Shown here: in pieces, positions 11,570-43,858 of the stretch
Layout: every line of letters begins with the position of its first letter
Position numbering within the stretch: the stretch's first letter is position 1
From: Octopus sinensis
Lineage: Eukaryota
Assembly: GCF_006345805.1 (NCBI RefSeq)
Contig: NC_043005.1
Coordinates: forward strand, 4,588,001 to 4,652,000
Direction: 5' to 3'
Length of the DNA: 64,000 bases
The notes under the pieces: model-generated
Told to the model about the DNA's origin: nothing
The model's database searches: none
The model's input: only the letters and a program-made list of their open reading frames with translations
Position numbers and translations under genes: made by a program

Positions 11570-11582
11570 ATGAAGTTATTCT
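11570..11582 (+). CDS. First coding exon (ATG AAG TTA TTC T; M-K-L-F, phase-1 donor) of a predicted secreted protein
   Basis: GCAGA-ATGAAGTTATTCT followed by consensus donor GTAAGT at 11583. Joined to the exon at 13388 it completes a TTA codon and gives a clean signal peptide MKLFLIFLLTSCLVVEKTHG. Confidence 0.75.
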
Positions 11583-11890
11583 GTAAGTAGGTTTTGTTGT
11601 TGTTGTTGTTGTTTAGCTCCCAGCCTGGCCCTTCAGTATCTTGGGCAGACCCCAGTTATTTTGCAAGCAATCTAAACCATGCTATCGAGGGATAACGTCC
11701 ACCTGTCACAAAAAGGACCCTGAAAAGAATTAGGGGGGTTTGTCCTCCACTTTCCATTTAGCCCTGATCAAGCAAACATTGGTTGAGAGACATTCCAGCC
11801 ATATATATATATATATATATATATATATATATATTATTATACACACATGTGTATATATATATATATATATATATATATATATATATATAT

Positions 11891-12300
11891 ACTCTTACTC
11901 TTTCTCTTTTACTTGTTTCAGTCATTTGACTGCGGCCATGCTGGAGCACCGCCTATAATTGAGCAACTCGGCCCCGGGACTTATTCTTTTTGTAAGCCCA
12001 GTACTTATTCTATCGGTCTCTTTTGCCGAACCGCTAAGTAACGGGGACATAAACACACCAGCATCGGTTGTCAAGCGATGTTGGGGGGACAAACACAGAC
12101 ACACAATCACACACACATACATATATATATATATATATACATATATACGACAGGCTTCTTTCAGTTTCCGTCTACCAAATCCACTCACAAGGCATTGGTC
12201 GGCCCGGGGCTATAGCAGAAGACACTTGCCCAAGATGCCACGCAGTGGGACTGAACCTGGAACCATGTGGTTGGTTAGCAAGCTACTTACCACACAGCCA
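11891..12300 (-). mobile_element. SINE family A copy inside intron 1 of the secreted-protein gene
   Basis: Reverse complement of the 18026-18420 element; near-identical to 57101-57514. Confidence 0.85.
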
Positions 12301-13387
12301 TATATATATATATATACATATATATGACTTTTGTACATAACCCCATGTGCTGTATATACACCCTTGATGACTTGTAGTGCTCCTGAGCACTGTACACAGT
12401 AATTCCATTATTATTATTATTATTATTATCATGGGGAAGAACAAAGAATATACACCACTTGCTGGCTCTGCACCATTTAGCTGTCAGTTTTCTCCTTTCA
12501 CTTATTTTCTATATAATCGCCTGCCCCCCCCCCTCTTTTCCTGTGTTTTTCTTTAATCTTTTTGATACTACATTCCTGTTAAAATAACTATTAAGCTGGT
12601 GTTTGAAACTTCAATTAACATGAAATTTTGATGAAAGGTTCTGCTTTAGTTCACATCAGCCCTTTTGTTTCTGATGAAATACACCAACTTTGCTTCGATT
12701 CATTTTGAAAATTATGAATAAATAAATATAATAACATTGTCATTGAAAAGCATGGAAAAGGATGCTTAAAGTGATGATGATGATGATGATGACGATAATG
12801 ATGCTGATATCTCATGATTTTGCTTAGTGATGCTACCATTGTTTTTATTTTAAATGGTTTTGAGGAAGCTGTGAGATGTTGTACAAGCAATTAGCTCCGA
12901 GTGCACTGCTTTTTATAGCAGAAACAGCTGTAAGCTAATGCAGGGGAATATGTAACACCTGTTCTTTTGTCATTCATTATTTGATGTGCACATGTGTGTG
13001 TGTGTGTGTGTGTGCGTGCATGTGTGTGTGAGTGTGTATTACCCAACACATTTTTCTCTCTGTTTTCTCCCTTCTTTCTCCATTTTTTCCCCTCTTGTCC
13101 CTTTCTGTAGAAGAGCCTAGGCTCGAAACATCAAAGACTTTTCCATTTTTCCTGAGTATCAAACTAATACACCTGCCTCTTGTTCCCTCACCTGTCTTTG
13201 TCTTCTTAACATTTGAACTATATATATAAAACATATACAGCAACACATAATATAAGAGAGAGAGAGAGAGAGAGAGAGAGACAGAGACAGAGAGACAGAG
13301 AGACAGAGAGACAGAGAGAGAGAGAGAGAGAGCAACCAAGTGAAAGAAACACAAAAATGGTGTTATATGATTTTTCTGTTTTTGCAG

Positions 13388-13587
13388 TAATTTTCCTGCT
13401 GACTAGTTGCTTGGTGGTAGAAAAGACCCATGGTCTACCTGACCTGGCTGGAATCATTGCTGGCCTCAGCGGCAAAACAATTGAGTTGCTGAAAAAAGTC
13501 ACAGTACCAATTTTGGATACACAGATTGGTTTCCTGAGAAGCCACATTGAACATCTGGTGTCGTTCTTCAAAGGAAGCGAAGGCGAT
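13388..13587 (+). CDS. Second coding exon (phase 1 to phase 0): rest of signal peptide and N-terminal mature region, (L)IFLLTSCLVVEKTHG-LPDLAGIIAGLSGKTIELLKKVTVPILDTQIGFLRSHIEHLVSFFKGSEGD
   Basis: Acceptor TTTTCTGTTTTTGCAG and donor GAT|GTAAGT bound a non-repetitive open frame (part of ORF 13213-13707). Hydrophobic stretch ends at a THG cleavage-like site. Confidence 0.8.
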
Positions 13588-41274: not shown

Positions 41275-41705
41275 ATCAAACCAAATCAAAATAGATGAAC
41301 ATCAATGGAATTTGTATCCTTGTGGTACCAGTGCCGGTGGCACATAAGAAAACCATCTGAACGTGACCGTAGCCAGTACCGCATCGACTGGCCTCCGTGC
41401 TGAGGGCACGTAACAAACACCATCCGAGCGTGGCCGTTCGCCAGCCTCGTCTGGCACCTGTGTCGGTGGCACATAAAAACACCATCCGAGCGTGGCCGTC
41501 TGCCAGCCTCGTCTGGCACCTGTGTCGGTGGCACATAAAATCACCCACTACACTCTTGGAGTGGTTGGCGTTAGGAAGGGCATCCAGCTGTAGAAACACT
41601 GCCAGATCTGACTGGCCTGGTGCAGCCTTCGAGCTTGCCAGACCCCAGTTGAACCGTCCAACCCATGCTAGCATGGAAAGCGGACGTTAAACGATGATGA
41701 TGACG
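41275..41705 (+). mobile_element. Family B retroposon inserted into a family A SINE
   Basis: Interrupts the SINE between its head (41044-41210) and tail (41720-41935); ends GGACGTTAAACGATGATGATG. Confidence 0.8.
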
Positions 41706-43070
41706 ATATATATATATATACATAAGTTTGTATATGATTGTGTGTCTGTGTTTGTCCCCTCAACATCGCTTGACAACTGATGCTGGTGTGTTTATGTCCC
41801 AGTAACTTAGCAGTTCAGCAAAAGAGACCGTTAGAATAAGTACTAGGCTTGCAAAGAATAAGTCCTGGTGTTGATTTGCTCAACTAAAGGCATGGCAGCA
41901 GTCAAATGACTGAAACAAATAAAAGAATAAAAGGATTATTTTTTTAAAAAGGCACCAATCTGGCAGAATTGCTGAGGTGTTGGACAAGTCACTTAGCAAT
42001 ATTTCTCCAGGCTCTTTACATTCTGAGGTCAAATTCCTCCCAGGACAACTTTGCCTTTCATCTTATCACAGTCAATAAAATAAGTATCAGTTGAGCACTG
42101 GGGTGCGTGTAATCAACTTAGCCCCTCCCCTTCAAATTGCTGGCTGGACTTGCACCAAAAAGTGAAACAACAATTTTTAGAATAGGTACTGATGATCTCT
42201 AAAAAGAATGAAATAGTGCCACACATGATTACCACAGACTGGAAATTTTAAGAAGTTCATTTTAAGTTAAAAAAAGAAAAAATTAAATACCTGTATCTTC
42301 TTGTATCTTCTTTCTTAAATTTCCTTAATTTCAAGTTCAATTTTCTAATCCGGTTCTGAAACATAATCTAATGATTATCTCCTGTGTAATAGCTGTTACT
42401 ACTAGAGGGACCATATGAATTATACCAGGCATGGGTAGCTTTTTTTTTCAAGAAGTGAGCAGCATGAGGCATGAATCACCATCAGGTGGGCCATACTACT
42501 AAGAAAATTCAAGGTAACTTTCATTGAAGGTGCACTTCAGAGAAACCTGTAGGTTGTAGATTGTCCTGACTGAGTTAGACAATCGGTTTTACAATACCTG
42601 CCAGGAGTGGAGATTCTTAACTTTGATTTTCTAAAAATCATTCCATAACTGCCAAGAATGCACAGATACAAACACCACCTGAAATATTAGTGATTCAATG
42701 TAGAAATATTAAAAAACCCAAAGTATATTTCAACTAAGGTGATACAGAGATGTATACAGGTGTACACACTCACACCCAAATTTAGTGTGCATGATTATAT
42801 GTATGTTTGTGCATATTCTTATATGCAGATATGTGTGTGTGTGTGTGTGAAAGAGAGGGGGAGAGAGGGAGAGGGTTGTATTTAAATGTGTGGGGGTTGG
42901 AGATTGTTTTGGATGCTGTGTGGCAGTTGAAAACTTGTTTTTCAAAGGTCATTATACCAATAATAAAACACACACACACACTTGTTCTATTTCATTTTTA
43001 TTATTATTAGTCAACTGATTAACCATTCAATCAATCATTTGATTAACTGTTTGGTCAATCAATCAATCAG

Positions 43071-43136
43071 CTAGGTCTTTTGTCACCATTTGCTGCCTCA
43101 TCAATGATGTGCTTTCTCTACTCCAGGTTGCTAATG
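43071..43136 (+). CDS. Candidate internal exon upstream of P4: 66 nt, phase 1 to 1 (xRSFVTICCLINDVLSLLQVAN), or a 10-nt version 43127-43136, phase 0 to 1 (VAN)
   Basis: Donor AATG|GTAACA is in the right phase for P4. Two possible acceptors: TCAATCAG at 43070 and CTTTCTCTACTCCAG at 43126. The long form resembles the exon-2 signal segment (F-x4-CL[IV]-x-[DE]). Confidence 0.5.
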
Positions 43137-43697
43137 GTAACAACAGGACTCGGATAGAACAAGCTGATTGATTGGTTGACCTAACAATTAATCAAAAAAA
43201 TCAATTAGTTAATTAGTTAAATGGTCAACTAGATGAATAATAACAATAAAATAAGTGAAATAGAGCCAGTGCATGTGTTTATTATTGGCATTAGGACCCT
43301 CCCAAGATACAACAAAATCTGTTTCAACAGATGATCTCACATCAAGAATTTTGGGAACCAAATAAAAAAATGAATCAAAATCTTTGTGAATAATAAACAT
43401 ACACTCCTTAAAGAGGTGCCATTCCACAAGAGATAGATAGAAAAATGGTTTGTATTTCATCATTGGATTTGGTGCTGCTTTTCTATCTCGAAATGGTGTA
43501 ACACATCATATTGAAAATCTCTTCAGATAATTATTTCAAAATTTAATCATTTTAAATCATGTGTGAATGAACGTATGGTGTTATGTAAGTTTTTACTTAA
43601 ATAAAGCCGTTTGTTTCCATTTTGACTTTTAAAATCCTGGTGTTGCAATGCTTATAGTTTTTCTCTAATTGCAAATATATATTTACATCTGTTTCAG

Positions 43698-43858
43698 TAA
43701 CTGATTTCAAGAAATGTAAGGCTACTGTGAAAGAAGCACAAACCGGTCTCAGTGCTACATGTGAGAAACATTATCAAAAGGAAGCAATTGAATGTGCGGC
43801 CAAAGAAGTTATTGATCTTCTGCAGGCATTAGTAAAGAAAGTTCAATCAAGTGCCTAA
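43698..43858 (+). CDS. Terminal exon P4 (phase 1): xTDFKKCKATVKEAQTGLSATCEKHYQKEAIECAAKEVIDLLQALVKKVQSSA*
   Basis: Acceptor TTTACATCTGTTTCAG (nearly identical to that of P3), open frame to TAA, AATAAA at 44251, same length as P3. Confidence 0.85.

Follow-up and report, generated by a model that had tools for sequence, protein, structure and literature searches.

Octopus sinensis LOC115215941, a probable single gene with four tandemly duplicated alternative last exons

Introduction

In genes of the calcitonin/calcitonin gene-related peptide (CGRP) type (CALCA), common 5' exons are followed by mutually exclusive terminal coding exons, which give a secreted precursor alternative C-terminal peptides. 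The Drosophila genes lola and mod(mdg4) encode nuclear BTB transcription factors in about 20 or more variants, some of which involve trans-splicing. Here we describe the gene LOC115215941 of Octopus sinensis, which lies in a 64,000-nucleotide (nt) stretch of RefSeq assembly GCF_006345805.1 (contig NC_043005.1, positions 4,588,001 to 4,652,000, forward strand). This stretch is called the window below, and positions are counted from its first nucleotide. We conclude, at a probability of a little under nine in ten, that LOC115215941 is one gene with three common coding exons and an array of four alternative last exons, P1 to P4. The array has arisen through tandem duplication of the terminal exon.

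Like CALCA, LOC115215941 has one promoter region, shared 5' coding exons and exclusive terminal exons, which carry a stop codon apiece and presumably separate 3' ends. Unlike the CALCA peptides, which are unrelated, its terminal exons are mutually paralogous and encode variants of one structural module; the likeness is one of exon structure rather than of demonstrated tissue-specific choice. With lola and mod(mdg4) the gene shares a constant 5' part that is joined to one of several homologous, tandem 3' terminal exons encoding variants of the same domain. It differs from them in its four variants, its small and presumably secreted cysteine-containing domain, its confinement to one strand and the lack of any sign of trans-splicing. 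As in mutually exclusive tandem-duplicated exons of the Kondrashov and Koonin type, and in Dscam1, the variable exons are homologous, in the same phase and of near-equal length, with one per protein. Unlike the exons of Dscam1 clusters they are terminal. Each carries a stop codon, and termination and polyadenylation are enough to make them exclusive without any special mechanism. No docking/selector signal rose above shuffled controls: in a crude test, the duplex energy of the first 300 nt downstream of exon 3 with the last 300 nt upstream of any P exon stayed within the range of 20 shuffles each. Rfam gave no RNA family in the window.

The mechanism that we propose is correspondingly simple. 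The donor of exon 3, which ends in phase 1 on a T, would be joined to any one of the four acceptors, all in phase 1; the stop codon and 3' end would come from the P exon that is chosen. Two processes would compete over this choice, namely splicing to a distal P exon and cleavage and polyadenylation after a proximal one. The front half of the protein would stay constant and its tail would be exchanged between isoforms.

Results and Discussion

Gene structure and annotated isoforms

The range 11570-43858 is the coding span of RefSeq gene LOC115215941 (annotated coding sequence span 32,289 nt), and the O. sinensis chromosome CM016867.1 matches the window over 52,289 nt with 0 mismatches. A tblastn search of the window with the tail peptides returned exactly four paralogous terminal exons, all on the + strand (E 1e-5 to 1e-17). 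P1-P4 bear the marks of a tandem duplication: they are homologous, all begin in phase 1, measure 161-179 nt and lie on the same strand (Table 1). Each is immediately preceded by a pyrimidine tract and AG. Their amino-acid identity among themselves is 32-58%, with three cysteines and 15 invariant positions in common.

Exons 1-3 were spliced in silico to each P exon, and the products were matched by exact sequence look-up. The P1 form is XP_029641168.1 (isoform X1) and is also identical to the O. vulgaris product CAI9728593.1; the P4 form is XP_029641169.1 (X2), and the P3 form is XP_029641170.1 (X3). The product of exons 1-3 and P2 (155 amino acids) is absent from the protein collection, so that three of the four isoforms, the P1, P3 and P4 forms, are already public in RefSeq. 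X1, X2 and X3 are identical over residues 1-96, and the constant N-terminus with a variable C-terminal domain that an earlier note on this DNA had proposed is thus matched by annotated proteins. LOC115215941 has the anatomy of an alternative-last-exon gene: its upstream coding exons are single-copy and common to X1, X2 and X3, and each of the four terminal exons behind them has a separate 3' splice site and ends in a stop codon.

Relatives of the protein were recovered by an exhaustive HMMER search; word-index protein searches with exons 1 and 2 and with a profile of the P exons missed even exact matches. The 150-amino-acid isoform X1 of O. bimaculoides LOC106883259 (XP_014789683.1) matched the P profile with E = 2e-21. 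The O. bimaculoides annotation holds two isoforms, X1 (P1-type) and X2 (P3-type). In that locus (L001), the P4 orthologue is hidden over its 5' half by a run of N (33427-33838), and this probably explains why only two isoforms are annotated there.

Table 1. Coding exons and associated elements of LOC115215941 in the window. A slash marks a splice site or junction.
Feature	Positions	Strand	Length or sequence	Splice sites and phase	Product and remarks
TATA-like box (predicted)	11508..11514	+	ATAAATA		~56 nt upstream of ATG; conserved in O. sinensis, O. bimaculoides and Argonauta hians (promoter alignment)
Exon 1, coding part	11570..11582	+	13 nt, ATGAAGTTATTCT	ends phase 1, then gtaagt	
Optional exon-2 5' extension	13357..13387	+			alternative first coding exon; in-frame ATG at 13357 (MVLYDFSVFAV...)
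Exon 2	13388..13587	+	200 nt	ag/TAATTT to GGCGAT/gtaagt; ends phase 0 at GAT/gtaagt	
Exon 3 (bridging)	16075..16150	+	76 nt (3n+1), IPVPETSFVLHFVADRCHIIGKRFL + final T	ttactag/ and /gtaagt; phase 0 to phase 1	
P1	24151..24314	+	53 codons, TAA	phase-1 acceptor, junction codon TTG	isoform X1, 150 amino acids
P2	35083..35261	+	58 codons, TGA	phase-1 acceptor, junction codon TTT	predicted 155-amino-acid isoform, unannotated
Exon 3/P2 junction (predicted)			...CGTTTCTTGT/TTGTTTGGCC...		
P3	39574..39734	+	52 codons, TAA	phase-1 acceptor, junction codon TTG	isoform X3, 149 amino acids
P4	43698..43858	+	52 codons, TAA	phase-1 acceptor, junction codon TTA	isoform X2, 149 amino acids

The earlier note had recognised a single ATG and signal-peptide leader, beginning at 11570 and continuing at 13388. 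These two pieces are exons 1 and 2, and each is single-copy (for exon 2, one copy in the window by tblastn). Exon 1 gives the N-terminus MKLF of XP_029641168/69/70, and the 13-nt leader followed by gtaagt is likewise present in O. bimaculoides and Argonauta. Together exons 1 and 2 encode MKLFLIFLLTSCLVVEKTHG/LPDLAG...GSEGD, 71 codons with an end in phase 0, of which exon 2 codes for the remainder of the predicted signal peptide and a helical region of ~51 amino acids. Exon 2 is 96.5% identical to its O. bimaculoides counterpart, as against 85-89% for introns.

Because exon 2 ends in phase 0 and P1-P4 begin in phase 1, the same note had called for a bridging exon of 3n+1 nt, and exon 3 is of this kind. 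If exon 2 is spliced straight to a P exon the frame is lost, and in the case of P4 the junction reads GAT/TAA. Exon 3 is among only 3 ab initio candidates between 13588 and 24150 (AG...GT, open in frame, 3n+1 long). Its product equals residues 72-96 of both XP_014789683.1 and XP_029641168.1 and bears Cys88 and an invariant G-K-R-F; the exon is 100% identical to that of O. bimaculoides and occurs once in the window. Exon 1 ends in phase 1, and skipping of exons 2 and 3 would keep any P exon in frame, with a product of ~57 amino acids without a signal peptide.

Upstream of the ATG, the sequence ATAAATA is a predicted core-promoter box of the TATA type, and the surroundings of the ATG are also conserved in the three species of the promoter alignment (Table 1). 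The single promoter envisaged in the earlier note holds as far as the single leader copy is concerned. It does not hold strictly, since O. vulgaris has an annotated second start at the position of ATG 13357: its product CAI9728594.1 (156 amino acids) begins MVLYYFSVFAV.... The in-frame ATG in O. sinensis and this O. vulgaris product suggest a second start or promoter within intron 1. The O. sinensis version of this N-terminus had no exact match in the protein collection.

The earlier note had kept four separate genes in play. On this reading the P exons would belong to four tandem genes, each with its own small, overlooked leader and promoter, and short leader exons are indeed readily overlooked. 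Ab initio exon scans of the intervals between P exons do return numerous candidates with an ATG and a donor in phase 1, but these do not have the look of a signal peptide and most lie within microsatellites, and the scans of these intervals gave no credible leader or internal exon. The earlier note had seen no ATG-plus-donor leader before P2, P3 or P4, and in agreement with this, no paralogue of exon 1, 2 or 3 is present in any inter-P interval of O. sinensis, O. bimaculoides or Argonauta. Neither exon 2 nor exon 3 had a second copy in the window, also when thresholds were permissive and the query was the divergent chiton sequence, and tblastx and blastn comparisons between inter-P intervals returned the P exons themselves and otherwise only microsatellites and transposable elements. 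In Argonauta the stop codon of the third P exon is only ~500 nt from the acceptor of the fourth, a gap too short to hold a gene of its own. The RefSeq isoforms connect the same exons 1-3 to P1, P3 and P4, and a P exon by itself supplies three cysteines without a signal peptide. As exons 1-3 have no duplicates in the octopus or Argonauta loci, the four-gene reading is rejected; we regard it as highly improbable.

The 3' ends differ among the P exons. P3 is followed by a pair of AATAAA hexamers at 40222 and 40244 (+488 and +510), which are the signals that the earlier note had placed at about 40250, and P4 by AATAAA at 44076 (+218). A boundary that it had drawn at 43071 does not stand: the P4 acceptor is at 43697/43698, and 43071-43697 is intron that overlaps an inverted-repeat element (42947-43298). 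Proximal 3' ends that are weak and distal ones that are strong would suit an alternative-last-exon gene with competing distal exons.

Several points weigh against a single gene with four alternative last exons. The canonical poly(A) hexamer nearest to P1 is ATTAAA at 24956 (+642), and neither AATAAA nor ATTAAA was found within 900 nt downstream of P2. The P2 form is missing from the annotations: exact look-ups of P2-type and other unannotated isoforms in four species gave no match. The O. vulgaris annotation contains P1-type products only, with two different starts. The XP_ records are computational models; as a rule, the NCBI pipeline adds extra isoforms only with transcript support. Signal-peptide cleavage and secretion were judged by eye only.

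Comparative analysis of the last exons

The loci of O. bimaculoides (L001) and Argonauta hians (L008) share one arrangement, in which the 13-nt leader, exon 2 and exon 3 occur once each and precede four P exons ordered as in O. sinensis; all of these P exons have phase-1 acceptors and stop codons. Across species, the P exons cluster by type, with P1, P2 and P3/P4 each grouping together, which dates the duplications to before Octopus and Argonauta separated. A Yip1-domain gene lies upstream in both O. sinensis and Argonauta, so synteny is conserved; its last coding exon in O. sinensis is at about 1587-1662 of the window on the + strand (ending in APIPSGSGTTTTTTTDTPLTTIHS and a stop codon).

Between O. 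sinensis and O. bimaculoides, the exons of the gene are 92-100% identical and the introns 85-89%. The ratio of nonsynonymous to synonymous differences per site (pN/pS) between these species is 0.25 overall (P1, 0.20; P2, 0.42; P3, 0.14). Against Argonauta, synonymous sites are near saturation and pN is 0.15-0.27, with ratios of the corresponding substitution rates (dN/dS) of 0.17 for P1, 0.14 for P2 and 0.31 for P3; for P4 and its Argonauta counterpart Pd, synonymous sites are saturated. The coding exons are under purifying selection in Octopoda.

Another explanation is that P1 alone, or only P1, P3 and P4, are genuine and that the others, P2 in particular, are unused and decaying relics of duplication. 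The case for it is built on P2, whose isoform is missing from every annotation checked, whose pN/pS is the highest between the two Octopus species and near which there is no canonical poly(A) signal; the O. vulgaris models, moreover, employ P1 only. The comparison with Argonauta speaks for the opposite. The P2 acceptor (ctcttcctag/TT), open frame, three cysteines and length are kept in O. sinensis, O. bimaculoides and Argonauta, with 88% amino-acid identity to the O. bimaculoides exon and 65% to Argonauta Pb. On an independent Logan genomic contig (L002), too, an exon of the P2 type keeps a phase-1 acceptor, the open frame, the cysteines and the length, and in this case it has a poly(A) signal. 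The dN/dS of ~0.14 against Argonauta (pS 0.69, pN 0.21) is low, and a dead exon would not remain open over such divergence. We consider the relic explanation unlikely, and P2 very probably functional; from its conservation we infer that it is used in splicing as a fourth alternative last exon of LOC115215941.

The predicted protein and its family

The products of LOC115215941 are predicted secreted proteins of ~150 amino acids. Secretion is suggested by the signal-peptide-like N-terminus, in which n, h and c regions are recognisable by inspection and positions -1 and -3 hold small residues, with the cleavage placed at MKLFLIFLLTSCLVVEKTHG/LPD. Residues 1-96, which the isoforms have in common, contain this predicted signal peptide and a long helical segment, together with two beta strands, Cys88 and a loop with G-K-R. 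The last 53-59 residues vary; they bring two further beta strands and a C-terminal helix, and three of the four cysteines lie in them.

An AlphaFold2 (AF2) model of the C-terminal 87 residues reached a predicted local distance difference test score (pLDDT) of 82.9 and a predicted template modelling score (pTM) of 0.71; the full-length model was poor across the N-terminal helical part. In the topology of the C-terminal model, strands b1 and b2 come from exon 3 and are followed by a K-R-F-L loop, where confidence is lowest, and strands b3 and b4 and a long helix come from the P exon. The boundary between exon 3 and the P exon sits in this loop, and an exchange of P exons therefore swaps half of a small four-cysteine, presumably disulfide-bonded beta4-alpha domain.

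Pfam gave no match for the protein, sequence searches of the PDB returned nothing under E = 0.2, and the best Foldseek matches to the PDB were not significant (E 0.36 to 0.53). Literature searches by locus names, accessions and peptide strings found no paper on the gene or its peptides. The family is an uncharacterised, mollusc-specific, four-cysteine family. In the chiton Liolophura sinensis, a 420-amino-acid homologue (XP_064596543.1) contains three complete units split by KPKR. Each resembles the octopus protein: it has a helix like that of exon 2, strands like those of exon 3 that include Cys and GKRFL, and a three-cysteine module of the P type. Intron positions and phases are the same, with the P-like part fused in one exon to the next unit. 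Unlike the octopods, which multiplied the last exon only and place one version in each transcript, the chiton tripled the whole unit in frame, with all copies in every transcript. A further member was found on an ENA metagenome contig (L006, 8939-10414), with an exon-2-like piece, an exon-3-like piece (LHLGKRAL) and one full P-like exon; two or three further, partial P-like copies (FLPGIERCKATVCENQ...) lie a few hundred nt apart on this contig.

The motif G-K-R-F is invariant in Octopus and Liolophura, with GRKRF in Argonauta and GKRA in an animal contig. Conserved dibasic or Gly-Lys-Arg sites, as in prohormones, are thus present in sequence, both as GKR and as KPKR between the chiton units. 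The protein might accordingly be read as a prohormone-like precursor in which the G-K-R of exon 3 is a convertase and amidation site, so that a constant ...CHII-amide peptide and four alternative C-terminal cysteine peptides, possibly disulfide-linked through Cys88, would be released. This reading is tentative and less likely than not. The conservation of G-K-R-F, the signal-peptide-like N-terminus and the placement of the GKR motif in the lowest-confidence loop of both AF2 models are in its favour, and the KPKR-separated, three-unit chiton polyprotein implies convertase processing in the family. On the other hand, AF2 folds exon 3 and the P exon as one compact domain over the GKR loop, where the motif could be structural. 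No similarity to known neuropeptide families was found, and an N-terminal product of ~72 residues is long for a neuropeptide. As a predicted processing and amidation site, the GKR loop is a doubtful candidate. Marginally less probable than the general reading is its cephalopod form, in which GKR would free a constant amidated N-terminal chain, and four different C-terminal chains of three cysteines, possibly joined to Cys88 by a disulfide, would come from the last exons. If true, it would amount to a CALCA-like switch built from duplicated exons and maintained since before the Octopus-Argonauta split.

Repeats and other features of the window

The window is AT-rich eukaryotic DNA, rich in microsatellites and short interspersed repeats. 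A 100-nt match between 12326-12424 and 40706-40805 was considered as a duplicated leader and rejected, being a repeat copy that ends in an (ATT)n run. By eye, this repeat looks like the tail of an element resembling a long interspersed nuclear element (LINE). In the intron between P2 and P3, 382 nt (36288-36669) are 95.8% identical to their own reverse complement and form a near-perfect palindrome or foldback element; weaker self-inverted elements are at 42947-43298 and 43887-44082. Intronic open reading frame (ORF) fragments at 28600-30400 (- strand), 34200-34580 (- strand) and 40440-40800 (+ strand) resemble what we take to be a Penelope-like element, a mariner/Tc1 transposase and a LINE 3' end; Pfam gave no match for them, and the names are unverified. 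Downstream of the gene, a GGN/GAT-type low-complexity repeat with strong GC skew (51858-52862) and a TA/CA-rich microsatellite block (54663-55811) create spurious ORFs of 300-380 amino acids on both strands.

Conclusions

What is new here is the conserved and unannotated exon P2, the age of the array, which predates the split between Octopus and Argonauta, the contrast between octopod array and chiton polyprotein, and the invariant GKR motif. General principles are unchanged by this locus, and the array is tidy but ordinary. A conserved fourth terminal exon is added to what current annotations contain. Octopods and the chiton represent two routes for diversifying one small, predicted secreted module, and the mollusc-specific four-cysteine family with its invariant GKR is testable as a signalling precursor.

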